Positions 901 to 59,665 of a stretch of DNA of 64,000 bases are shown here, in pieces (positions within the stretch are counted from its first letter, which is position 1; each line of letters opens with the position of its first letter). Both the position numbers and the translations under genes were made by a program. The notes beneath the pieces were generated by a model. The model made no database searches, was not told the origin of the DNA, and worked only from the letters and a program-made list of their open reading frames with translations. Location: positions 62,001 to 126,000 of IMG/VR virus record IMGVR_UViG_3300045973_000169, one strand, 5' to 3'.

Positions 901-1167
901 ATGAAAAATGCTTTTGAAATATATAGTGATGCAGAGAAACTTGAAGAACAACTTAAACCATTTCAATACTTTATGGCTGGATGTGGGATAACTGGTTTTG
1001 CGAGTGCTTTTTTAGCAATAATATGGTCTCCATTTGTTTATGGGGTATTTGGTTTGTTTTTAGCTGGTATTATTGCTGGGTTTCTTGTCCAATACGAAAA
1101 TAAAATTGGGCGATGGAAAAGAGAAGCTATTAGACTCTATGGTAGAGATGAAGAGGAGTATTGGTAA
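901..1167 (+). CDS. small membrane protein (2 TM)
   Basis: Two hydrophobic segments; stop overlaps RT start (TAATG). Confidence 0.6.
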   Translation: MKNAFEIYSDAEKLEEQLKPFQYFMAGCGITGFASAFLAIIWSPFVYGVFGLFLAGIIAGFLVQYENKIGRWKREAIRLYGRDEEEYW

Positions 1168-1925
1168 TGCTTGATCTTACTGATAAAAGATCCTTTTATA
1201 ATATATATCCTATTAAGAAGGCTAATGGTAAGATTAGGATTATACATGCTCCTAAAAAAGAACTTAAAGATGAACAGAAAAAGCTTGCAGATGCATTAGA
1301 AAAATGGTATAATCCTCCTGATTGTGTATTCGGTTTTATCAAAGGTAAATCTCCTAAAGACTTAGCTCAACATCATATTAATAAAGATTGGATTGTTACT
1401 CTCGATATTAAAGATTTCTTTCCAAGTATAACTAAAGCTCTGTTAAAAGAGTTATTAAGATTAGATGACTATTGGATAGAAGTTGCAACTTATGAAGATA
1501 AACTTATACAAGGTAGTCCAGCGAGTCCTATATTAAGTAATCTTGTAATGCTATGGCAGGATAAGTTCTTTGAAATGTATGCTTTTGTAAATGGGTATAC
1601 TTATAGTAGATATGCAGATGATTTAGTGTTATCAGGGATGGGTAAGCCTAAATGGGATTATATCAATTATATAGAGAGCCATTTAAATGGATTAGGTTTT
1701 AGATTGAATAAATCTAAGATTAAATTTATGTTTAAGAATCAAGAGCAAAGAGTTCTTGGTATTACAGTAAATGATAAGGTTAGTCTAAACCATAAAGTTA
1801 GAAAGAAGCTTAAAAATACGATTAAATATAATCCTATGAGCAATGTATTACAAGGCTATATGGCTTATGTTAATAGTATCAATAAAGATCAATTTAATAA
1901 AATAAAAGAACAAACAAAAGGGTAA
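1167..1925 (+). CDS. retron-type reverse transcriptase (compact, ~252 aa)
   Basis: K..G..R.I.AP, GF..GKS, LAQHH (NAxxH-like), LDIKDFFPSI, QGSPASPILSN, YSRYADDL, VLGITVN (VTG-like); ATG at 1167 overlaps upstream TAA. Confidence 0.92.
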   Translation: MLDLTDKRSFYNIYPIKKANGKIRIIHAPKKELKDEQKKLADALEKWYNPPDCVFGFIKGKSPKDLAQHHINKDWIVTLDIKDFFPSITKALLKELLRLDDYWIEVATYEDKLIQGSPASPILSNLVMLWQDKFFEMYAFVNGYTYSRYADDLVLSGMGKPKWDYINYIESHLNGLGFRLNKSKIKFMFKNQEQRVLGITVNDKVSLNHKVRKKLKNTIKYNPMSNVLQGYMAYVNSINKDQFNKIKEQTKG

Positions 1926-1928
1926 CAA

Positions 1929-2807
1929 ATGGAAGGCAATATTGAACCTATTGGTCTTTATAATCCGGAAATTGTAGATGCTAAACTATTAAAATATATC
2001 ATTCCTAATGGGAATCCAATTGAAACTATCTTTGCTCCCTTTATGGCAAAGATGTTCAAAAAGAGTAATGTAATTATTAAATGTAAGTTAGAAAAATTTA
2101 AAAAGAAATTTAATATTACATCTGACGTATTAGAACCTATGGAAGATATATGGAAGAACTTTGATGTTATAGTAGCTGGTGGGAAACTTATTGACTTTTG
2201 TAATAACAAAACTAAAGAAGAATCTACTAATGACTATGATATGTTTTTTATTTCCTCTACTCCTAATAAACAAGGAGAATATGGAACTAGTATTCATACA
2301 TACTTAACGAAAGAGTTGAAGTTTAATACTACCGCTACATTAAGTTATGTAACTGAATATATAAATGATAATCAAATTAAACTTCAAACTATAAATAAAG
2401 TATATGTTAATGCTGACCATATTTTAGAAGAGTTTGATATCAGAGCTTGTGCTATCTGTACGGATGGCAAGTATGTCTATTGGGTTAAGGGTGCTATTAG
2501 GGACATTAGAGATAAGCAACTTGTTATATTAAATCCTAAAAATAGTCCTCGTGGGATGCATAGGATAGTTAAATATATACAAAAGGGATATGAACTTAAA
2601 TTGCCAGATATGGCTTTGATAAGTATTAGATTCCTTGATGCTTTCTTTGGTTCGTCAGTACAACCTGATATCCAGCAAGAACTTATTAATAGGAATTTTT
2701 CTATTACTCGTAGTTCTATTAATATGGAAATGTATGATGAAATGGTTAATGGAAATACCCATGAGCTAGGTGATGCTGGTATAGAAGCAGCCACTACACC
2801 GTTTTAA
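1929..2807 (+). CDS. Pol-beta-superfamily nucleotidyltransferase-like protein
   Basis: VAGG...NDYDMFF and FDIRAC motifs, R..KY..KGY; resembles phage CCA/poly(A) polymerase head-like proteins. Confidence 0.65.
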   Translation: MEGNIEPIGLYNPEIVDAKLLKYIIPNGNPIETIFAPFMAKMFKKSNVIIKCKLEKFKKKFNITSDVLEPMEDIWKNFDVIVAGGKLIDFCNNKTKEESTNDYDMFFISSTPNKQGEYGTSIHTYLTKELKFNTTATLSYVTEYINDNQIKLQTINKVYVNADHILEEFDIRACAICTDGKYVYWVKGAIRDIRDKQLVILNPKNSPRGMHRIVKYIQKGYELKLPDMALISIRFLDAFFGSSVQPDIQQELINRNFSITRSSINMEMYDEMVNGNTHELGDAGIEAATTPF

Positions 2808-2887: not shown

Positions 2888-3100
2888 ATGGAAAACGTAA
2901 ACAGTACAGTAGTAGAGTTCGCAAATGTTGACTTCGTAGCAGAATTGATTGGGGACCTTGATGCAGAGCATGTCCGTGATATGCTTTCTGATACTTACCA
3001 GTTTCTTGAGAATGCAGTTTATACTGAGTCTTATGATCCTGAGCTGGAGCAGAAGCGTATTATCTTCTCTGAGAAACTTGGCGATAAAGGTCAGTTTTAA
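2888..3100 (+). CDS. ubiquitin-like modifier (PRTRC protein C-like)
   Basis: 70 aa; EHVRD....Y..L.NA...F....G.KG pattern with C-terminal GDKG-QF; strong SD; upstream of E2/JAB/E1 genes. Confidence 0.75.
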   Translation: MENVNSTVVEFANVDFVAELIGDLDAEHVRDMLSDTYQFLENAVYTESYDPELEQKRIIFSEKLGDKGQF

Positions 3101-3131
3101 TTCTTATTATTACTAAGATTTAATTTTATAT

Positions 3132-3166
3132 AGCGTCTATGATAGAGATATCATAGGCGCTTTTTT
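3132..3166 (+). terminator. intrinsic terminator after Ubl gene
   Basis: agcgtctatgata-gaga-tatcataggcgct followed by T-run. Confidence 0.85.
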
Positions 3167-3179
3167 ATCTGAGGTTAAT

Positions 3180-3482
3180 ATGGATTATGAAACAAGCAAT
3201 AAGATTGTAGTAGAGATTTTAAAGTTATCTAATGAAGAATCAAAAGTATATGATTTTGCTGAAATAAGTAAGTTTAGTGAATCATTGCCAAAAGAAATAA
3301 CGATTAATAAATTTGTTAATAGTATCCCTGGTATAGATGAAAAGTTAGAAGAATTATTAGATTCTTTATCTGAGTATTATAACTCACAAACTATCTTTAC
3401 TAATCTTGGTGTTATCTTTGGGAAACTTGTTACAAATACAAATTTCGATTATTATAAAGAGATGCAAAATGAACAGATATGA
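3180..3482 (+). CDS. hypothetical protein in Ubl operon
   Basis: ORF with SD gagg. Confidence 0.6.
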   Translation: MDYETSNKIVVEILKLSNEESKVYDFAEISKFSESLPKEITINKFVNSIPGIDEKLEELLDSLSEYYNSQTIFTNLGVIFGKLVTNTNFDYYKEMQNEQI

Positions 3483-4293
3483 AGTTGGTAATCACTCAAC
3501 AAAAATATGTCAATCTTATATTGTTGCTGGTTTATATAAAAAAGGATTTTTAAAATCTAAAGCATTTACTTTCACTAATAATACAGAGGATCTACAAAAT
3601 AAATTACATCATATAATTAAATCATCTGTAAACAAAGAGATTGATAAAGATTTTAGAGAAGTATTTACTGAAGTTAGATTTTCAAGATGGCAGGGGCTAA
3701 GAGTAAGTTTGCTTTTAACTAATCAATATGGTAAATGGGCTATGTTTAAGGCTAGGTCTAAAGCTATCCTAGATAATGCTGCTATAGGTTTATCTGGAGT
3801 TATGAAATTAACTTTAAATGGTAACCTATTATCGTATGCATTTGATGGTTTAAGTAGTAGTATTAATCCAAGTCAGTATTCCAATAGTACAACTTTAATT
3901 AATATAAGAGAGACTTTAGATAATGTTATTAGTTGTATTATGTATATTCCATCTAGTATAGCTGAATTTGGTAACCTGGCTAAAGAGATTAATAAGATAG
4001 ATATTAATTACAATTATTCTATTAAAGATATTAGAGATATTTTTAATTCATGTCATATTCATTCTACTAGTCAAAGAGGTCCTTTAACTAACTTACAATT
4101 ATCTCTTAATACATTTATTGGGAATGATCTAGATGGACTTGAAGATAGACTTGGTACTATTGTAGATATTGAACCTAAGTATAAAGATTTATTTGTACAA
4201 ATGGAAGGTATGAGTTATTATCCTTCTCCAGGACTTGTTGAGCTATTAGAGTATTTAAATGTAACTATAGGAAGATTAAATGGACATCCTTGA
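3469..4293 (+). CDS. hypothetical protein in Ubl operon
   Basis: Long ORF (ATG MNRYEV at 3469), overlapping neighbours. Confidence 0.6.
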   Translation: MNRYEVGNHSTKICQSYIVAGLYKKGFLKSKAFTFTNNTEDLQNKLHHIIKSSVNKEIDKDFREVFTEVRFSRWQGLRVSLLLTNQYGKWAMFKARSKAILDNAAIGLSGVMKLTLNGNLLSYAFDGLSSSINPSQYSNSTTLINIRETLDNVISCIMYIPSSIAEFGNLAKEINKIDINYNYSIKDIRDIFNSCHIHSTSQRGPLTNLQLSLNTFIGNDLDGLEDRLGTIVDIEPKYKDLFVQMEGMSYYPSPGLVELLEYLNVTIGRLNGHP

Positions 4294-5014
4294 ACTTGAA
4301 GAAACAGAAGAAGTAAAAGTAGACAAAAAGACAAAGCCTATGTTTTCAATAAAGGTTTATGGGAATAATTGTATTGTCGATATTAACAATAATAATGGGA
4401 AAGGTAATACTATAAAGACTGTTAAGTTAGAGTCTTTAGTTAAAGCTTTCCAGAATACAGATACAAAAATTGAATCACCAATTTTACCATTGAATTGTAT
4501 CAGATATCAGGAGCATGGCTCTAATATATCTGTTATCTTATATCATCCGCCTAAGAAGTTCAATGCAACATGTTTTAAAGATGTATTTGAAGATTGTATT
4601 AGACCAGGGATTGTTATCAAATATATCTTAGGGTATAAGAATGATCCTAACTATGGTAGGTCTTATAATATCCAAGACTCTAGATGTTTTGGAGTGGTAG
4701 ATGACTTTGGTTTGTTCTCTAATAAGACTCAGTTATTTGGATTACCGTTTCCTAATATTAGCTCTGAAGGTTGGGTATGTTGGGGCTCTAATAGTATAGG
4801 TGGAGAGATTAGAGCTTTAACTGGATTGTATGTTTATATTGATAGGATTTTTAATAGTCCTTTTAATAGTCATATTTTCCATAATGCTTTACTTAAGAAC
4901 TATGGCATTAATGAGCCTAGAGATTTGTTTAAGTATATCCAAGGAAGAGATAGATTCCCTAATGAATTACTTGAGAATCTAGGTGCTAAGAATTGGACTT
5001 TAGGTAAACTATAA
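4280..5014 (+). CDS. prokaryotic E2-like conjugating protein (Prok-E2_D / PRTRC protein B-like)
   Basis: LPFPNISSEGWVCWGSN catalytic-Cys motif, followed by FNSPFN. Confidence 0.8.
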   Translation: MDILELEETEEVKVDKKTKPMFSIKVYGNNCIVDINNNNGKGNTIKTVKLESLVKAFQNTDTKIESPILPLNCIRYQEHGSNISVILYHPPKKFNATCFKDVFEDCIRPGIVIKYILGYKNDPNYGRSYNIQDSRCFGVVDDFGLFSNKTQLFGLPFPNISSEGWVCWGSNSIGGEIRALTGLYVYIDRIFNSPFNSHIFHNALLKNYGINEPRDLFKYIQGRDRFPNELLENLGAKNWTLGKL

Positions 5015-5802
5015 TGGGACAAATGACACAATCTAAACAGATATTCCCTATTATTGAGGGACTCCCTGAAGGTGGAGCTAAGTCATTTGTTACTTATTCT
5101 GTTTGTTCTAATGGTATCTTTCAAACTAGATTAGTTTGTGGTAAAGGGTCTATTACTACAAAGGTAGAAGGAATTAAAGGATTACCTGAAGGGAAAGAAT
5201 CAATTGATATCTTGCCTAGGAAAATCCCTATTTCTTACTTCTGGAAGATAGTTGAATTCTTTAGGCATGTTAAGGAAACGTTTAATGAAAAGCTTGAAGC
5301 TTATATTTTATTAGGTTATAACTTTGATGAAGATAAGTTTATGTTATATGTCCCAAAACATTCAGTTGGAGCTGCTCATGTTAAATATGATATTGAATCT
5401 TTTTGGAAAGATTATCCAGGATACTATTTAGTATTAGATGCTCATTTACATTGTGACTTTGGAGCTTTCTGGTCTGGGACTGATAATGCTGATGATAAGC
5501 GTGATAGATTCAGTATGGTTATTGGACATCAAGATAATCCTATTCCAGATGTTAAGCTTAGATTTGCTAATGGAGCTAAACATATAGATTATGATTTACG
5601 TGAACTCTTTACTAAAGAAACTGAAGATATTGACTTTGACTTTAAGAAAGCTATTAAGAATATAAGTTATACAAAGCCTGAGTTTGTAAAGACTAATACA
5701 GGATATGTTGGAAGAAATGATGTTTCTTTCTATGATTCATTAAGATTCAGAATAAAACAAGAAAAACAATTCAGTCTTCAAGAATTGTTCCCAGGATGGT
5801 AA
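5014..5802 (+). CDS. JAB/MPN metallopeptidase (PRTRC protein A-like)
   Basis: E (KLEAY) plus DAHLH..FGAFWSGTDNADD = JAMM HxH...S..D motif. Confidence 0.85.
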   Translation: MGQMTQSKQIFPIIEGLPEGGAKSFVTYSVCSNGIFQTRLVCGKGSITTKVEGIKGLPEGKESIDILPRKIPISYFWKIVEFFRHVKETFNEKLEAYILLGYNFDEDKFMLYVPKHSVGAAHVKYDIESFWKDYPGYYLVLDAHLHCDFGAFWSGTDNADDKRDRFSMVIGHQDNPIPDVKLRFANGAKHIDYDLRELFTKETEDIDFDFKKAIKNISYTKPEFVKTNTGYVGRNDVSFYDSLRFRIKQEKQFSLQELFPGW

Positions 5803-5894
5803 TAAATGGCAACAGATAGTTTTGATGAATTATTTAAATAGTATGATAAACATTGTCGTTATTAACATATAGCTCAAATATTAAGGAGACCTAT

Positions 5895-6626
5895 ATGGCG
5901 TATACTACAAATACATGGATTAATAAAGCTAAAGAAATTCATAATGATAAATACGATTATTCATTAGTTAATTATTCTGGGAATAAAAATAAAGTTATCA
6001 TTATTTGTAAATTACATGGCGAGTTTTTACAAATACCAAATGATCATACGCAAGGGAGAGGATGTCGTTATTGTGGGAGTGAGTCAAAAGGGAACTATAA
6101 AAAGTTGACTATTGAAGAATTTATTCTACGGTCTAATGTAAAACATAATAATAAATATGATTATAGTAAGTCTAGTTATAATGATGGATATAAGACAAAA
6201 ATATGTATAATTTGTCCTGATCATGGAGAATTCTTTTCAACTGGGAATAATCATTTAAATGGGAGTGGTTGTCCAATTTGTAATGAGTCCAAAGGTGAAA
6301 ACATAATACGTGAATGGCTTATTTCTAATAATATAGAATTTAGAATGTCATATAGATTTAAAGACTGTAAATCAAAACAACCTTTACCTTTTGACTTCTA
6401 TCTTCCAAATTTAAATATTTGCATTGAATATGATGGTGAACAACATTTTAAGGCTACATGGCCTAGAAATGATAAGGATATTGCTACGAAAAATCTTATA
6501 ATGTTACAAGGTAGAGATAAAATTAAAGATTTATATTGTATTAATAATAAAATAAAACTAATAAGGATCCCTTATAATAAATTCAAAAATATTGGACTTA
6601 TTTTAGAGGATAAAATAAAAGGATAA
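5895..6626 (+). CDS. free-standing homing endonuclease, Zn-ribbon repeats + PD-(D/E)xK domain
   Basis: Repeated KYDYS...IC..HGEF...H..G.GC..C modules, PFDFYLP..CIEYDGEQHF; SD ggag before ATG 5895. Confidence 0.85.
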   Translation: MAYTTNTWINKAKEIHNDKYDYSLVNYSGNKNKVIIICKLHGEFLQIPNDHTQGRGCRYCGSESKGNYKKLTIEEFILRSNVKHNNKYDYSKSSYNDGYKTKICIICPDHGEFFSTGNNHLNGSGCPICNESKGENIIREWLISNNIEFRMSYRFKDCKSKQPLPFDFYLPNLNICIEYDGEQHFKATWPRNDKDIATKNLIMLQGRDKIKDLYCINNKIKLIRIPYNKFKNIGLILEDKIKG

Positions 6627-6628
6627 AT

Positions 6629-7756
6629 ATGGATTTATCAGAAATGTTTAAGTATGGAAAAGTTAAATGTGCTCCTACTATGAATACTGAACAGAGGTTT
6701 TCTACTAATGTTCATATAGTTGGATGTGGAGGGACTGGAAGTAGACTAATCCCTTTAGTTGCTCAAGCAATAGCTATACATAACCAGATAATTGCAACTC
6801 AGCCTAATCATAAGGAATATCTTAAAGGACCTATTAATTTAGTCCTCTATGATTGTGATGAAGGCGTTGAGTTGAAGAATCTTGAAAGACAAGGATTCAT
6901 TCCTAGTGATATTGGGAAAAGAAAAGAAGTAGTATTGGCTGAAAGATATGGTGCATGTTTTGGCATTGATATAACTTATGTATCTGATAAGATTAAGTAC
7001 GAGAATACTGTCTTCTCTGGAGCCAATAATATATTCTGTGATTGTACTGACAATCTAAGTGCTAGAAGAGCTATTGAGGATATCTATTATAGGTATTATT
7101 CTAATTGTGTTCTTATTTCTGGTGGTAATGGTGAAGACTTTGGTCAAGCAATGGTCTCATTTAAGTCTAATAATACTAACTTAAATATGAAAACAAAGCA
7201 TTTTACTGATGAAATATTCAGACTGAAATCTTTAATTGATCATCCAGATGTTAAGACTAATAAGACTATTAATATTCTTCCTACTCTATTAGAGCTATAT
7301 CCTGAATTTAAAGATACTGAAGGTCCTAGTTGTGATGAGGTTTTATTAAGGAATGAACAATCTATGCCTATTAATAACCTTGTAGCTACTCTTATGTATA
7401 ATATCTTTTATAGTGCTATCAATGGAGATCCATTTACTTATAATATGGTTAAATGTAATCTTAGTAATACATTTGATACTAAGAAGATAACACATCCTAA
7501 AGCTATGTTTGAACTTTTAGTAAGTGGGGTTACTGGCAGTAAGAATGGATATGCTGCTATTGAAGAATGGCGTAAATTGAATATTGCTCGTACTGGACAT
7601 TTTGTTCTTGTTGCTGATGTAGTTAAGTTTTTAGAACAGTATAAAAAGAAAGCACTTAATATTGTTAATGGATATATACTTGATAACTGGAAGTTAACAC
7701 CAGCAGATCATATAGTTCTTAACAATGCTATTAAGACTGTTAAGGAGGAGGATTAA
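6629..7756 (+). CDS. ThiF/E1-like activating enzyme (PRTRC ThiF-like)
   Basis: VGCGGTGS, D..VELKNLERQ, G..K..VLAERY, DCTDN..AR, PSC candidate catalytic Cys. Confidence 0.9.
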   Translation: MDLSEMFKYGKVKCAPTMNTEQRFSTNVHIVGCGGTGSRLIPLVAQAIAIHNQIIATQPNHKEYLKGPINLVLYDCDEGVELKNLERQGFIPSDIGKRKEVVLAERYGACFGIDITYVSDKIKYENTVFSGANNIFCDCTDNLSARRAIEDIYYRYYSNCVLISGGNGEDFGQAMVSFKSNNTNLNMKTKHFTDEIFRLKSLIDHPDVKTNKTINILPTLLELYPEFKDTEGPSCDEVLLRNEQSMPINNLVATLMYNIFYSAINGDPFTYNMVKCNLSNTFDTKKITHPKAMFELLVSGVTGSKNGYAAIEEWRKLNIARTGHFVLVADVVKFLEQYKKKALNIVNGYILDNWKLTPADHIVLNNAIKTVKEED

Positions 7757-7757
7757 T

Positions 7758-7985
7758 TTGCCTTTATATGTAATTAAATGTTCAAATGAAGAATGTGATA
7801 AATTTAATATCACTTCTGAAGTTAGAATGTCATTTGAAATGTTAGGGATAACAATGTGTCCATCTTGTGGAAGTAAAATGATTCAAGAGGTTAGTAAGGT
7901 TGGATTTAATATCCAGGGATTCTGTCATAAGAATGGCTGGGAAATTGAGCATATGAATTATGATGGAACTAAACCAGACTGGTAA
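7758..7985 (+). CDS. FmdB-like zinc-ribbon protein
   Basis: TTG start after ggagga; PLYVIKC...C...CPSCGS. Confidence 0.7.
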   Translation: MPLYVIKCSNEECDKFNITSEVRMSFEMLGITMCPSCGSKMIQEVSKVGFNIQGFCHKNGWEIEHMNYDGTKPDW

Positions 7986-8481
7986 TATATTATTACATAT
8001 AAGTGGACCTTGTTTTAGTGGAAAGACTTATTTATTATCTCATTTAATTGAAGATTTTGCTGGGTTTAATGTTATCACTTTTGAAAAACATTTTGATAGT
8101 GATAATAAAACATTAAAACAAATGTATGGTCATTTCTATCAGGATATATTTAATACACTTGAAACATCTAATGTTATAGGTGAAAGTATATATAGTTCTA
8201 GTAATAAGATTCTTTATTGTAAGTTTAAGAATTTAATTAATATAGTTACATATCCAGATTATGAACATCATAAAAAGAACTATGATAGGTTTGTTGAGAA
8301 ATTTGGGAGTAGGGTAGCTAATAAAAGAACTGGGGGTTCATCAATTAGCTTTCTAAGGAATGATTTTATAACGAAGGGCTGTCCTCCTAATAAGATCCTA
8401 TATGATGGAAAGAATTATAATACTGTTAAAGAAGAGATAAAAAATGTATTTAGAAAATATAACAATTATAAAGCAATCTGA
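7960..8481 (+). CDS. P-loop kinase-like protein
   Basis: ISGPCFSGKT Walker A. Confidence 0.6.
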   Translation: MMELNQTGNILLHISGPCFSGKTYLLSHLIEDFAGFNVITFEKHFDSDNKTLKQMYGHFYQDIFNTLETSNVIGESIYSSSNKILYCKFKNLINIVTYPDYEHHKKNYDRFVEKFGSRVANKRTGGSSISFLRNDFITKGCPPNKILYDGKNYNTVKEEIKNVFRKYNNYKAI

Positions 8482-8749
8482 ATATGAAGGTGAATGTTCT
8501 ATTAAGCTTACTGATGAAGATGGTATGACTTTAATACTCAATAAGTTAATTATTGACTTGACAAATGGGGCAGAACCTGTTAAAATAGTTAAATTCAATC
8601 AGACACCTGTTGTAACTGGAAGCTTTATTGAAGGCATCAAAACTCATATTTTGGAGCTATGGCAAGATTACTTTAAGACTAGTCTTGCAGTTGGAGCATA
8701 TGTCGTTGATGGAGAAGGAATAACAAAACTATAAAGAGGGTAACAAAGA

Positions 8750-9139
8750 ATGGAAATTACAAAAGTACAAGTATGGAAAAACAAAAGTGAAACATTTGTA
8801 GCAAATTGCAGCGTTGAATTTGATGATGTATTTTTTGTCAAATGTAAAGTAGTTAAGTCAAGCAAAGATGGGTCTTTATTCATTTCTTGGCCTAATACCA
8901 AGGGAAAAGATGCAGATGGAAATGATAAGTATTTCCCAGATGCAGGTTTTGTTTTAGGTGAAGATGAAGAAACGAAATATGACTTTAAGAATGCTATTGA
9001 TGATCAGATTATCAAAGAGTATAATAAAGTTGTAGGGATTGATTCTGGTACGAAGAATGGTAAGAAGGATGAAACTCCTCCTGCTGATCCGACTCCAACT
9101 AAGAAAACCCCTGATATTAAATTTGGGCCTAAGAAATAA
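8750..9139 (+). CDS. SpoVG-like nucleic-acid-binding protein
   Basis: MEITKVQV...VEFDDVFFV..KVV...G.LFISWP pattern of the SpoVG fold. Confidence 0.7.
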   Translation: MEITKVQVWKNKSETFVANCSVEFDDVFFVKCKVVKSSKDGSLFISWPNTKGKDADGNDKYFPDAGFVLGEDEETKYDFKNAIDDQIIKEYNKVVGIDSGTKNGKKDETPPADPTPTKKTPDIKFGPKK

Positions 9140-11420: not shown

Positions 11421-11882
11421 ATGGGCAGTAAAGATAAAGTAGTTGTATATCTTGATATAAATAATTTATTTCATAGATATAAAAAATTAGATTTTATAAA
11501 GTTAAAAGAATATATATCTGGAGCATATGATATTGTCAAGATAACAGCTTTTAATAGTATAGATCATACGAATCAAAATCAAATTAAGTTTAATACTTAT
11601 TTAAGTAATAATGGATATCGGATAGAAGATCCTGATGTAAATGTAATGAGCAATGTTGATTTTATGATCATCACTCAAATGGGGATGGATTCTAATTGTT
11701 TATCTCATACAGTAGTAATTATAGTAGCTTGTGATGGAGGGTATTCTTATACACTTAATGAACTTTCTAAGGCAGGATATAGAATTGTCACTATTGGATG
11801 TAAAGAGAATACAAATTTAAATTTACTAAAAGTCTCTGATGAAGTTGTTTATCTAGAGAATCTAAATGGAGTTATACTGTGA
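11421..11882 (+). CDS. NYN/PIN-fold ribonuclease
   Basis: VYLDINNL, NVD, ACDGGY, L..VSD motifs of NYN domain. Confidence 0.75.
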   Translation: MGSKDKVVVYLDINNLFHRYKKLDFIKLKEYISGAYDIVKITAFNSIDHTNQNQIKFNTYLSNNGYRIEDPDVNVMSNVDFMIITQMGMDSNCLSHTVVIIVACDGGYSYTLNELSKAGYRIVTIGCKENTNLNLLKVSDEVVYLENLNGVIL

Positions 11883-20228: not shown

Positions 20229-20999
20229 ATGCAAGATAGAGAATATATAATTTATTGTTTTTTAGATGAGAATAATAAACCTTATTATGTTGGACAAACT
20301 TATAATCTTAAGATGAGATTAAATGCCCATAATCAATTTATTTTAGATATTGAAGAAAAAAGATTACCATCTAAATACCCATATTATCGTAAGGCTAGAG
20401 ATTTATTTAAAAATGGTATAGGATTAAAAGTAAATATATTAGAAAATAATCTTACCAAAAAAGAAGCAGACTTAAAAGAGTCTGAATATATTAGTAAGTT
20501 TAGAAATGATATTTCCTGTAAGTTATTAAATATTTTAGCTGGTGGTGAATTTAATCAAAGAAATAAATTTGTGTCTGATGAAACAAAAAAGAAAATAAGT
20601 GAATCTAAAAAAGGGAAAAAACTTACAGAAAAACATAAAGAGTCTTTAAGAAATTGTGATAGGAAACAAAGGAACTGGACAGAAGAAGATAAAATTAAAT
20701 ATGCTAAAATGGCAAAAATAAATTTATTGAATAAACAAACTCCAGAGAGTATTGAAAAGATGCGTCAGTCTAAAGTTGGGCAAAAACATTCTGAAGAAAC
20801 TAAAAGTAAAATAGCAAGATTTGGGAAAGATCATAAAAGAGCAAAGCACTATTTGATTATTGCCCCAGATGGGACTAATTACGATATTCATGGACTTTCT
20901 TCTTTTTGTAAAGAATTTGATTTAAACCAAAGTGGACTATGGCATGCTCTTAATAAAGGAAATGGTAAATATAAGGGATGGCAAATTCAAGAACTGTAA
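20229..20999 (+). CDS. GIY-YIG homing endonuclease with NUMOD3 repeats
   Basis: IIYCF...YYVGQT..R...E...LLN; SDETKKKIS / HSEETKSKI repeats. Confidence 0.9.
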   Translation: MQDREYIIYCFLDENNKPYYVGQTYNLKMRLNAHNQFILDIEEKRLPSKYPYYRKARDLFKNGIGLKVNILENNLTKKEADLKESEYISKFRNDISCKLLNILAGGEFNQRNKFVSDETKKKISESKKGKKLTEKHKESLRNCDRKQRNWTEEDKIKYAKMAKINLLNKQTPESIEKMRQSKVGQKHSEETKSKIARFGKDHKRAKHYLIIAPDGTNYDIHGLSSFCKEFDLNQSGLWHALNKGNGKYKGWQIQEL

Positions 21000-22168
21000 A
21001 GTTAATTTATGTAAATGGGATTGGGGCTAACAATAATAAGTTCTATGATATGATCGATACAGAAGACGGATATTTTACTATTAAATATGGTCGAGTAGGA
21101 TCTACTGAAACTGTAGATAAGAAAGCTATTGGTAAATGGGATTCTGTATATAGAGAGAAGACTCGTAAGGGTTATAAAGATATTACTAAGTTGTATATAG
21201 AAGAGAAAGTGGATGTAGTTGATTTTGCTGATATTAGTGATTATGCTATTAAAGAGATAATTGCTAAATTGCAAGCTTATTCTAAGAAACAAGTAACTAC
21301 ATTCTATACTATCTCTGCTGAAAAAGTAACTAAGAAACAAGTAGATGAAGCTCAAACTATTTTAGATGGATTGATCCCATGTAAAGATGTTGAGTGTGCC
21401 AATAAGCTACTTATTGATTTATACTCTGTTATACCTAGAGCTATGAGTCATGTTAAGCATCATTTACTTTCTAGTTTTGAACAGAAAACTCTTGATAATA
21501 TGATAGCTAGAGAACAATCTATTCTTGACTCAATGGCTTCTTCTGTTAAGCAGGTTGAACTTGTAAGAGAGAATATAGATTCTAGTAAGACTTTACTTGA
21601 TGCTCTTGGTGTAGAAGTATATCAAACAATGCCTAGTGATGTAGATCTTATTAAAATGAAATTAGATAACTTAGTTGATAGATATTTGAACTCATTTAGA
21701 GTAGTTAACAAAAAGACTCAGGTTAAGTTTGATAATTTTGTAAATAAAATTGATAACAAAAAGACAGAGTTATTCTGGCATGGGAGTAGAAATGAAAACT
21801 GGATTTCAATACTTGAAACTGGTTTGGTCTTACGTCCGACCAATGCTGTTATTTCTGGGAAGATGTTTGGGTATGGCACCTACTTCGCAGACAAGGCTCA
21901 AAAATCCCTAGGATATACCTCTTCTTATGGTTCACTGTGGGCTAAAGGAAGTTCTAATGAAGCCTATATGTCATTGTTTGATGTCCATGTTGGGAATCAA
22001 TATATAGTTGAACAGAGTGAATCTAACCTTGATGCACAAAAGTTAAAGGCTAAAGGTAACTTTCATTCTACTTTTGCTAAAGCTGGTAGATCATTAATGA
22101 ACAATGAATATATTGTTTATGATGAAGATCAATCTACAATTAAATATCTTGTACAATTAAAAGGATAA
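20978..22168 (+). CDS. WGR-domain PARP-like ADP-ribosyltransferase
   Basis: NKFY...YGRVG (WGR); LY..IP regulatory-like region; catalytic WHGS, GKMFGYGTYFAD..KS.GY, NEYIVY (H-Y-E triad). Confidence 0.9.
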   Translation: MANSRTVKLIYVNGIGANNNKFYDMIDTEDGYFTIKYGRVGSTETVDKKAIGKWDSVYREKTRKGYKDITKLYIEEKVDVVDFADISDYAIKEIIAKLQAYSKKQVTTFYTISAEKVTKKQVDEAQTILDGLIPCKDVECANKLLIDLYSVIPRAMSHVKHHLLSSFEQKTLDNMIAREQSILDSMASSVKQVELVRENIDSSKTLLDALGVEVYQTMPSDVDLIKMKLDNLVDRYLNSFRVVNKKTQVKFDNFVNKIDNKKTELFWHGSRNENWISILETGLVLRPTNAVISGKMFGYGTYFADKAQKSLGYTSSYGSLWAKGSSNEAYMSLFDVHVGNQYIVEQSESNLDAQKLKAKGNFHSTFAKAGRSLMNNEYIVYDEDQSTIKYLVQLKG

Positions 22169-24328: not shown

Positions 24329-24402
24329 CAGTGTGTACCGGGAGTCTGGTCCCCGCCTTGCCTTGGACGCAAGAAACGCAGGTTCAAATCCTGCCGCACT
24401 GA
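24329..24402 (+). tRNA. tRNA-Pro(TGG)
   Basis: cttgc-ctTGGac-gcaag; T-arm gcagg-ttcaaat-cctgc. Confidence 0.88.
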
Positions 24403-24480
24403 CATTGCCTTTTGACCCAATCATAGGGTTTAGACCAAAGTAGTTATTAACAATTAGAAATAAATTCTAGGAGTTATATT

Positions 24481-25077
24481 ATGCTGTGTTACTATGGTTG
24501 TGGTCAAGAGGCCGGGTTTGAATTAAAGAATGGAAGACATATATGTTCTTCATCATCAAATCAATGTCCAGTACAAAAAAAGAAAAATTCAGAGAATAGT
24601 AATAATAGATATTTTAAAATTAATGCCTCTGCTATTAAAAGTAAATGTAAGTTCTGTAACAAAGAGATTTCATCTACTAGTATTAAAGTTCATGAATTAA
24701 ATTGTTTTCTTAATCCAGAAAATATTAAATTATGTCCTGTATGTAATAAGCCAATTAAAAATTTTAGAAAATCAAATACATGCTCTTATGGTTGTTCGAA
24801 TACATTTTTTAGAAGCGGTAAAGATCATCCAAATTGGAAAGAGGATATAGATTGTGGATATAGAAAAATATGTTTTAGTGTCCATAAAAAAGAATGTATT
24901 ATATGTGGAGAAGTTAAAATAGTTGCAGTACATCATTTTGATGAAAATAAAAATAATAATAATATTGATAATTTAATTCCTTTATGTCCTACACACCATG
25001 TATATTGGCATTCAGGATATAAAAATGAAATTGAACAAAAAGTAATTGATTATAGAAATAAATTTAAATCTGCTTAA
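24481..25077 (+). CDS. HNH homing endonuclease
   Basis: HPNWK, CIICG...VHH.DEN..NN...NLIPLCPTHH. Confidence 0.9.
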   Translation: MLCYYGCGQEAGFELKNGRHICSSSSNQCPVQKKKNSENSNNRYFKINASAIKSKCKFCNKEISSTSIKVHELNCFLNPENIKLCPVCNKPIKNFRKSNTCSYGCSNTFFRSGKDHPNWKEDIDCGYRKICFSVHKKECIICGEVKIVAVHHFDENKNNNNIDNLIPLCPTHHVYWHSGYKNEIEQKVIDYRNKFKSA

Positions 25078-25173
25078 GTTCCAGTACATTCAATTATGCT
25101 GGGGAACGAGCACTAAAGAAGTGTAAGCTGAGTCTAAGAATGAGAGGTAGGTTGGCAGATTTAATAATAATGT

Positions 25174-25246
25174 TGCGGATTGTAAGTAATGGTTAACGAA
25201 AAGGCTCATAACCTTCTTCTTGTGAGTTCGAGTCTCGCATCCGCTA
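25174..25246 (+). tRNA. tRNA-Met(CAT), initiator-like 1:72 mismatch
   Basis: aagg-ctCATaa-cctt; T-arm gtgag-ttcgagt-ctcgc. Confidence 0.8.
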
Positions 25247-25269
25247 CTATGTTATTTTAGAGGAGGAAT

Positions 25270-25602
25270 ATGGAAAAGGCTTGTAAACATCATGGATTAA
25301 CTAAGTTTAGTCTACAAAAGTCAAATGGCAGAGAAACTTATTATTGTGTTAAATGTTATATGGAAAGACAGAATCGTACAAGGAATAATAAGAAAGAACA
25401 AGCTTTAACCTATAAAGGTGGTAAATGTTCAATCTGTGGGTATGATAAATGCAGTGCTGCTTTAGATTTCCATCATCTTAATCCTCTAGAAAAAGAAAGT
25501 AAAAATGATTTAAGAAATCTATCATGGGATAGATTAAAGATTGAACTTGATAAATGCATTCTTGTATGTGCTAATTGTCATAGAGAAATACATTTTAAAT
25601 AA
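25270..25602 (+). CDS. HNH endonuclease
   Basis: GGKCSICGY...ALDFHH..P..K...LVCANCHREIH. Confidence 0.9.
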   Translation: MEKACKHHGLTKFSLQKSNGRETYYCVKCYMERQNRTRNNKKEQALTYKGGKCSICGYDKCSAALDFHHLNPLEKESKNDLRNLSWDRLKIELDKCILVCANCHREIHFK

Positions 25603-25607
25603 GATAT

Positions 25608-25682
25608 GCACCGTGGGACGGCAGGAGTGGTCAGTAGCCTTTCACGCTACTCAGATGGGTTCGATACCCATACGGTGTACCA
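25608..25682 (+). tRNA. tRNA-Glu(TTC)
   Basis: gtagc-ctTTCac-gctac; CCA. Confidence 0.9.
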
Positions 25683-25686
25683 ATAA

Positions 25687-25764
25687 GCGGATGTACAGGT
25701 GAAGGGGCCACCAGGAGCCTTCCAAGCTTCAGATCGCGGGGTTCGACTCCCCACATCCGCTCCA
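25687..25764 (+). tRNA. tRNA-Gly(TCC)
   Basis: ggagc-ctTCCaa-gcttc; CCA. Confidence 0.88.
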
Positions 25765-25768
25765 AATT

Positions 25769-25844
25769 GCCTTTATAGCTCAGTGTGTAGAGCGTAGCCC
25801 TGAAGAGGCTAGCGTCCGGGGTTCGAATCCCTGTGAAGGCACCA
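25769..25844 (+). tRNA. tRNA-Phe(GAA)
   Basis: tagcc-ctGAAga-ggcta; CCA. Confidence 0.92.
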
Positions 25845-25849
25845 TTAAT

Positions 25850-25930
25850 GCCCTAGTAGCCACCGAAACTACGAATTTCGAGTTAGGTAATGGACTGCAA
25901 ATGCTAGTTCGAATCTAGTCTGGGGCTCCA
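25850..25930 (+). tRNA. atypical tRNA-Arg(ACG), no canonical D-arm, long variable region
   Basis: Acceptor gccctag/ctggggc, cgaaa-ctACGaa-tttcg, T-arm gctag-ttcgaat-ctagt, CCA. Confidence 0.7.
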
Positions 25931-25936
25931 AAATAT

Positions 25937-26023
25937 AGTACGGTGTCCGAGTGGCTGAAGGAACTGGTCTCCAAAACCAGAGAGATGACTCCAACGTGGG
26001 TTCGAATCCTACCCGTACTGCCA
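25937..26023 (+). tRNA. tRNA-Trp(CCA) with long variable arm
   Basis: ctggt-ctCCAaa-accag; variable arm gag-atga-ctc; CCA. Confidence 0.85.
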
Positions 26024-26041
26024 AATTAAAAAGGAAATAAA

Positions 26042-26419
26042 ATGCAAAAATTGGTTAGTAGTAAAGAAGAATATGTAAATATGAATGACTTTGTTTATGA
26101 TAAAAAGAAAATTTATGTTTATAGGCAGATAACTCCTAAGTTTGATAACTCAAGTGAGAAAGAAGTAAAATGGGGAATATTCTCTGAACATGCTGGTGAG
26201 TATGGTGGATATGGATTCATCATGTTAGGTAATTGTTCTAATGGATGGACATCTAAGCCAGAATGGAATAAAGATGTTAAAGAATATTTTTCTAAGATGA
26301 TTAAAAATAGCGGTTGTACTATAAGTGATATTTTAATTTTTAAAGATCTTAAAGATTTTTTAGGTTGGATGTCATATGAAGTTGGTGGTACAATTGGTTA
26401 TTTAAAATATTGTGAATAG
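26042..26419 (+). CDS. hypothetical protein within tRNA array
   Basis: ORF with SD aagga. Confidence 0.6.
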   Translation: MQKLVSSKEEYVNMNDFVYDKKKIYVYRQITPKFDNSSEKEVKWGIFSEHAGEYGGYGFIMLGNCSNGWTSKPEWNKDVKEYFSKMIKNSGCTISDILIFKDLKDFLGWMSYEVGGTIGYLKYCE

Positions 26420-26424
26420 TAAAT

Positions 26425-26520
26425 GGAAGAGCTGACCTCAAAGGCAGCGGGGCCCAGTCTTGAAAACTGGTAGCCGTCAGCAATGGCGGCGTGAGGGTTC
26501 GAATCCCTACTCTTCCTCCA
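26425..26520 (+). tRNA. tRNA-Ser(TGA)
   Basis: ccagt-ctTGAaa-actgg; long variable arm; CCA. Confidence 0.9.
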
Positions 26521-26526
26521 TTAAAT

Positions 26527-26558
26527 AGAAGGTTACCCAAGAGGACAAAGAGAAGTTC
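26527..26558 (+). pseudogene. orphan 5' fragment of a tRNA-Ser-type gene
   Basis: agaaggttacccaagagg..aagagaag resembles a Ser tRNA 5' half; ends just before GTTATTAACA. Confidence 0.55.
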
Positions 26559-26596
26559 CGTTATTAACACTTAGGTATAATCTAAGGAGTTAATAT

Positions 26597-27115
26597 ATGA
26601 AAATCTGCTTAAAATGTAATAAAGAGTTTAAGTCTTCTGGTATTATAGATGGCACTAAAAAGAAATTTGGGAATAGAAAATATTGTCTTGAGTGTTCTCC
26701 ATGGGGAAAGCATAATACACAGCCTCTTATAGAAACTGGGAAAATTAAAGAAGAGATAAGTGAACGTAGATGTTCAAGGTGCAATGAGGCAAAAGATATA
26801 TCTAGTTTTTATAGAAGTGGAGAAAAGCTTCTATCTATTTGTAAAGAATGCCATAAGAAATTAAGTAAAAAACTCTATGATGCTAAGATTGCTTCAATGG
26901 ATGAGTATAAGGCTAATTTAGGATGCTCAAAATGTGGGGATAAGAGACCTTATGTTTTAGATTTTCATCACAAAGATCCTCAAGAAAAAGAATTTTCTAT
27001 TTCTGATAAAGCCAGAGCGTCATTAGTTGTATTGTCAAAAGAACTTGAGAAATGTGTTTGTTTGTGTGCTAATTGCCATAGAGAAGAACATTATTTACTA
27101 AAAATGGAAGGGTAG
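26597..27115 (+). CDS. HNH homing endonuclease; last codons overlap tRNA-Ser(GCT)
   Basis: CSKCG...VLDFHH.DP..K...CLCANCHREEH. Confidence 0.9.
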   Translation: MKICLKCNKEFKSSGIIDGTKKKFGNRKYCLECSPWGKHNTQPLIETGKIKEEISERRCSRCNEAKDISSFYRSGEKLLSICKECHKKLSKKLYDAKIASMDEYKANLGCSKCGDKRPYVLDFHHKDPQEKEFSISDKARASLVVLSKELEKCVCLCANCHREEHYLLKMEG

Positions 27116-27193
27116 CCTAATTGGTAGGGAAGCTGTTTGCTAAACAGTCGGGATGTAAAAGTTCTGCGGGTTCAAGTCCCGCTCCTTCCTCCA
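27106..27193 (+). tRNA. tRNA-Ser(GCT)
   Basis: gctgt-ttGCTaa-acagt; long variable arm; CCA. Confidence 0.88.
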
Positions 27194-27212
27194 GCCTTCT
27201 GCCAAAAGTTTT

Positions 27213-27291
27213 GGTCTGTTAGTTTAGTCTGGCCTAAAGCACCTGCCTGTCGAGCAGGTTATCATCGGTTCAAATCCGATACAGACCGCCA
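27213..27291 (+). tRNA. tRNA-Asp(GTC)
   Basis: cctgc-ctGTCga-gcagg; CCA. Confidence 0.9.
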
Positions 27292-27299
27292 TACATTTA

Positions 27300-27375: not shown

Positions 27376-27381
27376 TAATAA

Positions 27382-27579: not shown

Positions 27580-27583
27580 TCGA

Positions 27584-58723: not shown

Positions 58724-59082
58724 AACTAAGAGTTACTAAAGTAAGATATGATGCTGTTGTTACAAAAGGAGCTTTATTCTTTTGTGATGAAGAAGATACA
58801 GTTGTTGCCCCTAATAGTGTTGTGCTATTAAAGACCGGAGTTAAAATTGCTGTTCCTTGTGAATATAAACTTGACATTAAGCTAATTGAAGATTTTATAG
58901 ATAGTGATATCGTCCTTCTTGGAGATACTGTTGCTCCATTAAAAATGGGGGCTGAGTTAGGGCTTATTGTTTCTAATGTAGGTCGTAAACAATTAAGAAT
59001 AGATACAGGTACAAAGATCGCTACATATAATATAATCAAATATGAAGATTATGAATTAGAGGATTTAGATGGCGTTGACTGA
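58720..59082 (+). CDS. dUTPase-fold paralog lacking catalytic motifs
   Basis: V.P...LLKTGVKIAVP, V.N....I..G.KIA; no RSS, GxxDxxY or motif V. Confidence 0.55.
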   Translation: MKLRVTKVRYDAVVTKGALFFCDEEDTVVAPNSVVLLKTGVKIAVPCEYKLDIKLIEDFIDSDIVLLGDTVAPLKMGAELGLIVSNVGRKQLRIDTGTKIATYNIIKYEDYELEDLDGVD

Positions 59083-59665
59083 TAACATTAGAGAAGAGTT
59101 TGTTAAACATTGCTTAGAAGATAGAGTTCTTTTAATAAATGGACCTATAGAGGATAGCATAGTAGAAGATACTATTATGCAAATTATCCATTGGAATAAA
59201 GAAGATACTATCGAAGAAGTTGATTCGAAGACTTACAATCGTAAAGACTTCCCTATTAAATTATATATTAATTCTAATGGTGGAAGTGCAACTGAATGTT
59301 TCTCGTTGATAAATGCAATGCAATCTAGCAAGACACCTGTACTTACCTTTGCTTTAGGTAAAGTGTATTCTGCTGGATTCCTTATTTTTATTGCTGGACA
59401 TCTTAGATTTGCTCAGAAATACAGTTCAATGATGTATCACCAGACCTCTTACATCAGAGGTGGAGAACAACAGTATCATGAAGAAATGCTTGAGTATGAT
59501 AAGCATGTTCAAAAAGTTGCAGAGGATATCGTTATGCAACATACTAAGTTCCCTAAAAAGAAGTTAGATGAGATTAAGAAATCTAAACAAGATTTCTATT
59601 TCCTTGCTAGTCAAGAAGAAGATCTTTATAGATCAAAATATAAAGTATTTGATTTTTATTACTAA
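59069..59665 (+). CDS. clpP: ClpP-like serine protease
   Basis: LYINSNGG, YSAG (Ser), MYHQ (His), D.Y. Confidence 0.85.
   Translation: MALTDNIREEFVKHCLEDRVLLINGPIEDSIVEDTIMQIIHWNKEDTIEEVDSKTYNRKDFPIKLYINSNGGSATECFSLINAMQSSKTPVLTFALGKVYSAGFLIFIAGHLRFAQKYSSMMYHQTSYIRGGEQQYHEEMLEYDKHVQKVAEDIVMQHTKFPKKKLDEIKKSKQDFYFLASQEEDLYRSKYKVFDFYY

Follow-up and report, generated by a model that had tools for sequence, protein, structure and literature searches.

A predicted ubiquitin-like conjugation operon of the PRTRC/type-6d kind in a jumbo phage from a pond

A six-gene stretch in IMG/VR record IMGVR_UViG_3300045973_000169 raised the question of whether a large phage can encode its own ubiquitin-like (Ubl) protein-tagging cascade, and, if so, to which known kind it belongs and what it does. 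The record is a 206,638-bp virus genome from a pond metagenome and is rated 100% complete by CheckV. We analysed a window of 64,000 nucleotides (positions 62,001 to 126,000 of the record). A preliminary description made from sequence alone had noted a Ubl gene with its own terminator, two unknown ORFs, an E2-like protein, a JAB peptidase, and a ThiF/E1. That observation was confirmed, with all ORFs at the positions given. The interpretation attached to it was partly supported, as detailed below. The tag precursor, trimming peptidase, E1 and E2 enzymes, and three accessory proteins form a complete set that is a divergent, ParB-less relative of the uncharacterised bacterial PRTRC cassette, and related phages make the tag as polyubiquitin-style tandem precursors. 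This suggests that some large phages tag proteins during infection.

Gene content of the cluster

The cluster lies on one strand and contains two genes absent from the preliminary description, a homing endonuclease and a zinc ribbon (Table 1). Overlapping stop and start codons link the small, large, E2-like, and JAB genes. About 30 relatives, almost all metagenomic, keep the same gene order, and the order Ubl - small - large - E2 - JAB - E1 is conserved from this phage to Bacillus, Salmonella, and Vibrio phages.

Table 1. Features of the cluster and the ClpP-like gene, in window coordinates.
Position	Strand	Feature	Length	Remarks
2888..3100	+	Ubl precursor, predicted beta-grasp of the PRTRC_C/Prok_Ub type	70 aa	Ends LGDKGQF; mature end predicted at Gly68, followed by the tail QF
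3132..3167	+	Intrinsic-terminator-like hairpin plus T-run	 	Hairpin at 3132-3161; 13-bp stem, 5 GC pairs, 4-nt loop
3180..3482	+	Small accessory protein, clade-specific	100 aa	Overlaps the next gene by 14 nt
3469..4293	+	Accessory alpha/beta-helical protein, clade-specific	274 aa	Overlaps the E2 gene by 14 nt
4280..5014	+	E2-like conjugating enzyme (Prok-E2_D)	244 aa	LPFPN...GWVCWG; predicted catalytic Cys167 in VCWG, Asn159 in FPN
5014..5802	+	JAMM/JAB metallopeptidase, predicted Ubl-precursor maturase and possible deconjugase	262 aa	Complete E..HxH..S..D motif
5853..6626	+	Free-standing homing endonuclease (DUF723/treble-clef zinc finger type)	 	Insertion, not a component of the system
6629..7756	+	ThiF-type E1 adenylating enzyme	375 aa	Roughly 95-aa C-terminal extension; crossover-loop Cys235
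7758..7985	+	FmdB-type CxxC..CxxC zinc-ribbon protein	about 75 aa	TTG start; last gene of the cluster
59069..59665	 	ClpP-like gene	 	51 kb away

Profile searches assigned all three enzymes. The E2-like protein matched Pfam Prok-E2_D (PF14460; E 2.9e-8) with 34.1 bits, above the gathering score of 25, and NCBIfam PRTRC_B at 1e-5. C167, N159, and P156 were invariant across phage and Dina homologues. The JAB protein matched PRTRC_A at 1.1e-12 and Prok-JAB at 5e-4 (20.4 bits, just under the cut-off of 25), and its E95, H144, H146, S154, and D157, which complete the E ... HxH x7 S xx D zinc-binding catalytic motif of JAMM/MPN+ metallopeptidases, were invariant. The E1 matched ThiF at 1e-13 and PRTRC_ThiF at 1.7e-21, with invariant G32/G34/G35 loop, R87-Q88, K99, D141, and S234-C235. 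These catalytic residues were retained across divergent phage homologues with 18-30% identity. No solved structure was detectable by sequence for E1, E2, or JAB.

The two ORFs of unknown function are real and conserved in relatives. The 100-aa protein was conserved in position and sequence in 8 loci, had no family hit, and had no similarity to PRTRC_E or to the small proteins of other sub-clades. The 274-aa protein had 7 homologues, with K29, S30, K45, K51, and N271 invariant. Its AF2 model (pLDDT 77, pTM 0.76) was mixed alpha/beta and gave no informative fold match, and hhalign found no match to Dina PRTRC_F or to the Bacillus, Salmonella, or Vibrio phage counterparts. These proteins had been proposed as adaptors or substrates. 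Neither role could be shown, since there was no sequence or fold match and the complex prediction, which the preliminary description had named as a check, gave no answer. The 274-aa protein is a candidate specificity factor or substrate.

The zinc-ribbon gene is a conserved last gene of the cluster in this clade, of unknown role. Its real start is the TTG behind a Shine-Dalgarno sequence, AAGGAGGAGGA, inside the E1 3' end, and an alignment of 5 homologues begins MP(I/L)Y. It was present after E1 in the nearest relative (locus L002), in three other related loci (L015, L019, and L020), and in two contigs seen without their DNA, with Zn_ribbon_8 hits in relatives at 6.4e-10. The homing endonuclease matched phrog_559 (4.4e-57), DUF4379, and DUF723. 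It was the only part of the region with DNA matches in isolated phages, namely to endonuclease genes of Staphylococcus, Streptococcus, and Yersinia phages, and was absent from the same junction in L002, where only 12 nt separate JAB and E1.

The Ubl precursor and its predicted processing

Whether the first ORF is a beta-grasp at all had been set out in advance as a point on which the interpretation could fail. The AF2 model (pLDDT 80) is a small beta-grasp with beta-beta-alpha-beta-beta elements and a floppy C-terminal tail. The top AFDB cluster matches were "PRTRC system protein C" with TM by query of 0.57-0.69, and a unit of the Enterococcus-associated poly-Ubl scored 0.76, although PDB fold matches were weak (E at or above 0.03, TM 0.4-0.56). 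The window's own protein had no direct hit to PF14454 or TIGR03738, but of 18 family members (relatives or units) 11 hit TIGR03738 (best 4.6e-5) and 10 hit PF14454. Membership of this Ubl in PRTRC protein C is therefore neither secured nor excluded by these searches. F60, K67, and G68 were invariant in 18 relatives or units.

The proposal that the JAB trims QF to expose Gly68 was strongly backed by comparison. The Ubls of relatives always carry G-x-K-G followed by 0-5 variable residues: some end exactly at GTKG with no tail, and others have the tails GSEI, C, CAL, LLSQI, RF, A, or AIA. Tandem precursors had 5 units in Bacillus phage Edson, 4 units in KLEB27-3 and an Enterococcus-associated 216-kb contig, and 3 units in Vibrio phage D69, P0014. 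Each unit ends in KG and the last is followed by a short tail. As in eukaryotic polyubiquitin and ubiquitin-fusion precursors, these head-to-tail units must be cut after the terminal glycine, while the window's own gene is the single-unit form. The units are about 57-68 aa and end in K-G rather than G-G, the predicted processing enzyme is a JAMM peptidase encoded in the same operon, and there is no sequence relationship to the eukaryotic precursors beyond the beta-grasp fold.

The suggestion of excess Ubl expression was also backed. The hairpin after the Ubl gene folds at -22.6 kcal/mol (z = -4.8), and none of 200 shuffles folded as well. An equivalent stem-loop of different sequence lay at the same place in all 15 homologous operons examined, with folding energies of -17 to -38 kcal/mol. 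We consider it a likely partial terminator that gives an excess of Ubl mRNA, although no transcript data were available.

These features favour protein conjugation over sulfur transfer, in which a ThiS/MoaD-like carrier would be thiocarboxylated by the E1 for thiolation of a cofactor, tRNA, or phage DNA. The E1 belongs to the ThiF/MoeB family, with secondary NCBIfam hits to ThiF and MoeB models, the Ubl has a C-terminal glycine, and the phage carries 13 tRNA genes and radical-SAM genes. Urm1 and SAMPs show that both roles can coexist. However, the 206-kb genome contained no sulfur-relay partners, with no rhodanese, cysteine desulfurase, MoaE/ThiG, or PP-loop ATPase or thiolase, though the host could supply these. 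An E2-like protein with invariant Cys was always present, and tandem precursors, variable tails, and an excess-expression terminator fit a consumed tag rather than a recycled carrier. Iyer et al. also note that these operons lack links to metabolic enzymes (PMC1779556, PMC3417536). We therefore regard a sulfur-carrier role as very unlikely.

Relationship to PRTRC and other Ubl systems

The nearest described kind is, as had been proposed, the PRTRC cassette (TIGR03734-03742), operon type 6d of Iyer, Burroughs and Aravind 2006 (PMC1779556), exemplified by Ralstonia phage Dina gp02-gp07. Both have a Ubl with a conserved C-terminal K-G, a family-D E2 with Cys, a JAB, a ThiF-type E1, and a large non-enzymatic-looking protein between the Ubl and E2, and both are carried on mobile elements. 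The order is colinear with Dina's annotated C-F-B-A-ThiF, and Dina's Ubl also carries a cleavable-looking extension, 63 aa after GRKG. The gene set and order agree with type 6d, as does an E2 with FPN instead of HPN plus a downstream histidine (H198 in FNSH). That histidine, called "absolutely conserved" in 6d E2s, was replaced in the Edson, Arash, and D69 homologues. The "alpha-helical protein" of type 6d and PRTRC_F have a counterpart here by position only, the 274-aa protein, whose model is mixed alpha/beta rather than all-alpha.

By curated cut-offs, however, the cluster is not a PRTRC member but a divergent sister clade. The best NCBIfam hit of the E1 scored 76.6 bits against 144.75 for TIGR03736, making it a homologue rather than an equivalog, protein A scored 47.9 against 101.8 (TIGR03735), and protein B scored 25 against 131.45 (TIGR03737). 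ParB, reported as unseen in the window, was absent from the complete genome, with no TIGR03734 or PF02195 match while controls responded. Proteins D, E, and F were also absent: the 100-aa and 274-aa proteins had no NCBIfam hits, hhalign against Dina's E and F gave probabilities below 1%, and no PRTRC_F-like fold match was found. Instead there are the two clade-specific proteins and a zinc ribbon, the host element is a lytic-type jumbo phage, some members have tandem precursors, and all have a terminator after the Ubl gene. The PRTRC kind is experimentally untouched, and no biochemical data exist for any such system.

Bil (BilABCD) is likewise a stand-alone Ubl, E2, JAB, and E1 operon that conjugates a Ubl to lysines without an E3 (PMC11601596, PMC10557695), but it is a host defence that tags a phage tail protein. 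Here the E2 family differs (Prok-E2_D) and the element is the phage itself. PADLOC models gave no hits for the Ubl, E2, or JAB and only E1-E2 at E 0.0019 for the E1, and there was no sign of the BilD tandem E1. Bub (6E) and CBASS Cap2/Cap3 are bacterial E1/E2(/JAB) conjugation machines on mobile defence islands. Bub uses serine oxyesters and a DUF6527 protease, and Cap2 is an E2-E1 fusion acting on a CD-NTase, whereas here E1 and E2 are separate, both keep an invariant cysteine, and no CD-NTase or DUF6527 was present.

Because host E1/E2/JAB systems act against phages (PMC10097602, PMC10557695, PMC11601596), the cluster could instead be a decoy or antagonist of Bil, type II CBASS, or Bub, with the phage JAB stripping host conjugates and the Ubl, E1, and E2 titrating or mis-charging host enzymes; the phage would then not be tagging targets of its own. 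Homologues of the upstream neighbour carry a precomputed Pfam hit to Gad2, an anti-defence family. We find this reading very unlikely, since the full catalytic equipment of all three enzymes is conserved over deep divergence, which a decoy would not need, and the enzymes are closest to PRTRC and not to Bil, Cap2, or Bub. The same module also sits on plasmids and ICEs as PRTRC, where no phage conflict of this sort is evident.

Proposed mechanism and possible targets

We consider a phage-encoded Ubl protein-conjugation cascade of the PRTRC/type-6d kind the likely explanation. In this model, a leaky terminator keeps the mRNA of the 70-aa precursor in excess over the enzyme genes, and the JAMM peptidase removes the two residues after Gly68 or, in relatives, would cut tandem precursors into units. 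The E1 would then adenylate Gly68 and take the Ubl onto Cys235, from which it would pass to Cys167 of the E2-like protein and be attached to lysines of one or more targets. The JAB may also reverse the mark. The translationally coupled 100-aa and 274-aa proteins and the trailing zinc ribbon evolve fast and are clade-specific, and in this view most likely give target specificity or are themselves substrates. Our analysis establishes the gene set, catalytic motifs, predicted fold, conserved G-x-K-G end with variable tails and poly-Ubl forms, and conserved terminator, while every chemical step, the direction of transfer, the target, and the biological role are inferred. Thioester intermediates and isopeptide-linked conjugates were not assayed, and only the residues required for them are shown to be conserved. 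Bub systems show that such cascades can use unexpected chemistry, oxyesters in that case (PMC11601596).

The preliminary description had also suggested that tagging might counter host defence or, with the phage ClpP, direct proteolysis. The ClpP link has no support, since the only ClpP-like gene is distant and showed no conserved linkage. A counter-defence role and the identity of the targets remain inference. The cluster lies among early or auxiliary genes (retron-type RT, a Gad2-like protein, NYN, SpoVG) rather than the structural module, and the likeliest purpose is therefore host takeover or counter-defence during lytic infection.

An unlikely possibility is that the cascade modifies the phage's own proteins, such as virion or replication proteins or the 274-aa protein itself, for assembly, stabilisation, or protection from host proteases or Bil-type tagging. 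The lambda TAPI/TAPK precedent links a Ubl and a JAB with tail assembly (PMC1779556), and the 274-aa protein has three invariant lysines. In phage Arash, the E1- and E2-like proteins are labelled "structural" because they were detected by LC-MS/MS in particle preparations. However, the operon in our phage lies far from structural genes, and the Arash preparation also contained RNA polymerase and ribonucleotide reductase, so detection shows expression, not virion residence.

Composition of the cluster

The cluster lies in a 206,638-bp virus record that was rated complete and that came from a pond metagenome, and the window is bases 62001–126000 of that record. The sequence has 30% G + C, every gene is on the + strand, and the replication genes resemble those of Bacillus jumbo phages only distantly. 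Nine tightly packed ORFs lie between 2888 and 7985, and the 100-aa, 274-aa, E2 and JAB genes overlap by 1–14 nt, which suggests translational coupling. The E2-like protein matched Pfam Prok-E2_D above the gathering score and PRTRC_B at 1e-5, the JAB protein matched PRTRC_A at 1.1e-12, and the E1 matched ThiF at 1e-13 and PRTRC_ThiF at 1.7e-21. The homing endonuclease between JAB and E1 (phrog_559, 4.4e-57) was the only part of the region with DNA matches in isolated phages and was missing from the JAB–E1 junction of the closest relative. It is therefore an insertion and not a component. The observation made in the preliminary description, a phage cluster of Ubl, E2, JAB and E1 genes, was confirmed and extended.

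Coordinates of the features in the window and in loci of related phages and contigs
Sequence	Coordinates	Feature	Length
Window	1161-1925	Retron-type reverse transcriptase
Window	1929-2807	Protein upstream of the cluster	292 aa
Window	2888-3100	Ubl	70 aa
Window	3180-3482	Accessory protein	100 aa
Window	3469-4293	Accessory protein	274 aa
Window	4280-5014	E2-like protein
Window	5014-5802	JAB
Window	5853-6626	Homing endonuclease
Window	6629-7756	E1
Window	7758-7985	Zinc ribbon (TTG start)
Window	8750-9139	SpoVG-like protein
Window	11421-11882	NYN-domain protein
Window	20978-22168	Protein with WGR and PARP catalytic domains	396 aa
Window	24329-28981	Cluster of 13 tRNA genes
Window	26425-26516	tRNA gene near the Rfam tRNA-Sec threshold
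Window	42718-43890	DNA polymerase III alpha, PHP plus start of the NTPase domain
Window	44582-45295	ORF between the polymerase ORFs	237 aa
Window	45539-47893	DNA polymerase III alpha, remainder
Window	59069-59665	ClpP-family protease
L003 (Salmonella phage Arash, OQ632216)	107-307	Unannotated Ubl ORF	66 aa
L003 (Salmonella phage Arash, OQ632216)	102-320	gp251c, overlapping ORF in another frame
L004 (Bacillus phage KLEB27-3)	718-1425	gp199, 4 tandem Ubl units
L006 (Vibrio phage D69)	3388-4179	3 tandem Ubl units
L007 (Bacillus phage Edson)	1815-2714	5 tandem Ubl units
L010 (Enterococcus sp. 4E1_DIV0656, 216-kb contig)	8001-8744	4 tandem Ubl units
L015 (related locus)	7273-7848	Insertion site in the cluster
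L019 (related locus)	4006-5418	Enlarged E1
Contig of P0003 (Ubl relative)	5915-7438	Enlarged E1

The Ubl precursor and its relatives

The 70-aa protein had no direct family hit. A word-indexed search of 5.8 billion proteins found one relative, 66% identical, that ends exactly at LGTKG. An exhaustive profile search of 1.84 billion representatives found about 13 true relatives, of which nine were single units of 65–73 aa carrying G-T-K-G, plus one (P0008) with A-T-K-G, followed by nothing or by 1–5 variable residues, and two were tandem forms. F60, K67 and G68 were invariant. With these sequences, AlphaFold2 gave a beta-beta-alpha-beta-beta domain with a disordered tail from residue 63 (pLDDT 80). 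Matches to PDB were weak and were to other small beta-grasps, namely the protein L and G B1 domains and several UBL domains and ubiquitin. A search of the AlphaFold-DB clusters placed “PRTRC system protein C” entries at the top, with probability 1.0 and TM 0.57–0.69, followed by TGS and UBL domains. Eleven of 18 family members or units hit TIGR03738 and ten hit PF14454. The preliminary description had specified that its reading would fail if this ORF were not a beta-grasp, and, within the limits of a prediction, the model does not contradict it on this point.

A single-protein scan of IMG/VR with the E2 and a tblastn of the E2 against 50,697 phage records both found nothing, and only profile and E1-based searches reached relatives. 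E1-based tblastn found homologous clusters in the isolated large phages Arash (Salmonella), KLEB27-3, Edson and WH1 (Bacillus), D69, D181 and D148 (Vibrio), and ME3 (Acinetobacter), as well as a fully annotated PRTRC (E-C-F-B-A-ThiF) in Ralstonia phage Dina. The metagenomic Ubls led to eleven further loci, and an IMG/VR scan gave eight more. An E2 profile search found 31 clusters in 5.8 billion proteins, all unnamed except one from an Enterococcus sp. assembly. The clade is rare and undescribed. The order was everywhere Ubl, small, large, E2, JAB and E1, with small and large swapped in Arash. An unannotated Ubl ORF ending GTKG heads the Arash cluster, where the GenBank record instead calls gp251c.

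Several relatives encode the Ubl as a polyubiquitin-like gene. Edson encodes five head-to-tail units of 56–57 aa, each ending AGTKG, plus a 15-aa tail, and KLEB27-3 encodes four units ending AGVKG plus 7 aa. The Enterococcus-associated contig encodes four units plus one residue, P0014 (a Ubl relative) has three units plus one residue, and D69 has three units joined by linkers. In Edson, KLEB27-3, D69 and the Enterococcus-associated contig, each unit ends in (T/V)KG, the last is followed by a short tail, and the genes are annotated only as hypothetical proteins. Dina’s protein C has 63 aa after GRKG. Together with the variable short tails, this is the signature of a modifier that must be cut after the terminal glycine, and the co-encoded JAMM peptidase, with its intact E..HxH..S..D motif, is the obvious enzyme. 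Because the Ubl ends in K-G, trypsin leaves only a single-Gly remnant (+57.02 Da), which has the same mass as carbamidomethylation.

A stem-loop followed the Ubl gene in all 15 operons checked, usually with a T-run and with unrelated sequences, and the hairpin in the window had z = −4.8. No RNA run contained the locus, and terminator read-through was not measured. This conserved punctuation, like the tandem genes, says that the Ubl is needed in large excess over the enzymes, which fits a consumed tag. A sulfur-carrier role is disfavored, since the genome has no rhodanese, cysteine desulfurase, MoaE or PP-loop enzyme and since the E2, the poly-precursors and the excess-expression design argue against it. 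It is not excluded because the host could supply partners.

Catalytic residues were invariant at 17–30% identity. These were Cys167 and Asn159 in the E2 and, in the E1, the nucleotide loop, Arg-Gln, Lys, the Mg-binding Asp, and Ser234-Cys235 in the crossover region. The conservation of all three active sites disfavors a pure decoy or deconjugase role. Self-directed tagging of phage proteins remains possible. In Arash, proteins of the cluster are labeled as structural proteins, but we rejected the idea that these labels show virion packaging, as they show only that the proteins are made.

Predicted function and comparison with known systems

The interpretation in the preliminary description was partly supported. 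Its biochemical reading, a Ubl precursor trimmed by JAB followed by an E1–E2 thioester relay to protein targets, is well supported by comparison, although the chemistry itself was inferred and not assayed here. The biological role is open, with host takeover or counter-defense the best guess. The preliminary description had also proposed coupling to the phage ClpP for proteolysis. We rejected this for lack of support, because the ClpP-family gene (PF00574, 1.9e-20) lies 51 kb from the Ubl cluster, between replication genes and ribonucleotide reductase, with no linkage.

The cluster is the operon type 6d of Iyer et al. 2006 (PMC1779556), later named PRTRC, which was predicted to conjugate a Ubl and was later speculated to be a selfish system acting “like R-M at the protein level” (PMC3417536). 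By curated cut-offs the proteins in the window are not PRTRC equivalogs, and ParB, D, E and F are absent. The cluster differs from Bil in E1 architecture and E2 family, from Cap2 in having no fusion and no CD-NTase, and from Bub in keeping cysteines and lacking DUF6527 (PMC11601596). We found no experimental paper on the PRTRC/6d class and none on phage versions, no assigned function, and no solved structure detectable by sequence.

Bacterial E1/E2/JAB systems have recently been shown to be antiphage weapons. A ParB-less version conserved in jumbo phages would put ubiquitin-like tagging on the virus side of the conflict, and its tandem precursors and built-in excess of tag over enzymes point the same way. 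A more far-reaching hypothesis, which the evidence permits but which we consider less likely than not, is that a clade of large lytic phages runs its own complete ubiquitin-like tagging system during infection, with polyubiquitin-style precursors, an operon-encoded maturase and clade-specific specificity factors, to mark host proteins such as immunity or proteostasis factors for inactivation. This would be the viral mirror image of Bil and CBASS and the first function assigned to the PRTRC/6d class. The cluster also gives an independent prokaryotic-virus example of the polyubiquitin gene design, and Edson, KLEB27-3, Arash and D69 offer culturable entry points to the biochemistry of the whole class.

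Accessory genes, insertions and other genes in the window

Accessory proteins. The 100-aa and 274-aa proteins were conserved within the sub-clade of the window, but hhalign showed no similarity to the proteins at the same positions in other sub-clades or to PRTRC E and F of Dina. An Atlas feature search for these middle genes was uninformative. The 274-aa protein modeled well with AlphaFold2 (pLDDT 77, pTM 0.76), and K29, S30, K45, K51 and N271 were invariant, but the model had no real match in the AFDB clusters, PDB or the Atlas. VIA-align gave a best Z of 8.1 to aminotransferase small domains and pterin-dehydratase-like two-layer sandwiches, which is within the stated background. A three-chain prediction of E2 with the 100-aa and 274-aa proteins returned no answer. 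The score of 0.70 fell only to 0.65 when E2 was replaced, and we did not use the prediction as evidence. A 70–75-aa FmdB-type zinc ribbon followed E1 in every member of the sub-clade. In the window it starts behind a strong ribosome-binding site and should be counted as part of the cluster. In some relatives the E1 is enlarged to 470–507 aa, and in one of them it carries a precomputed BRCT domain hit, hinting at a link to phosphoprotein or DNA-damage signaling.

Insertions. The cluster is a hot spot for selfish insertions, with DUF723/HNH endonucleases between genes. Among the related loci, insertions were found inside JAB in L012/L013, L018 and one further contig, and after the Ubl gene in L014 and L018. 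LAGLIDADG genes on the opposite strand split the JAB gene into two ORFs in several relatives, which could mean an intron or intein. In L015 an NT5C gene is inserted after the Ubl gene.

Flanking genes. The retron-type reverse transcriptase (retron St85 RT model, 4.6e-50; PADLOC RT_III-A, 6e-54) and the 292-aa protein lie directly upstream and are syntenic with the Ubl cluster in most relatives. No msr/msd RNA was sought. Homologs of the 292-aa protein carry precomputed PF26128 (Gad2) hits, and the Gad2 label comes only from these, as our own Pfam scans did not reproduce it. The SpoVG-like and NYN-domain proteins are encoded downstream, and SpoVG is syntenic in the closest relative (L002), L015 and the P0003 contig.

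Other genes. The PARP-domain protein (7e-24) is a PARP-like ADP-ribosyltransferase in a phage. One of the tRNA genes scored just over the Rfam tRNA-Sec threshold (48.9 vs 47 bits). The DNA polymerase III alpha subunit is split into two ORFs about 1.6 kb apart, with the 237-aa ORF in the gap, which could be an intron, an intein or a homing-endonuclease interruption.
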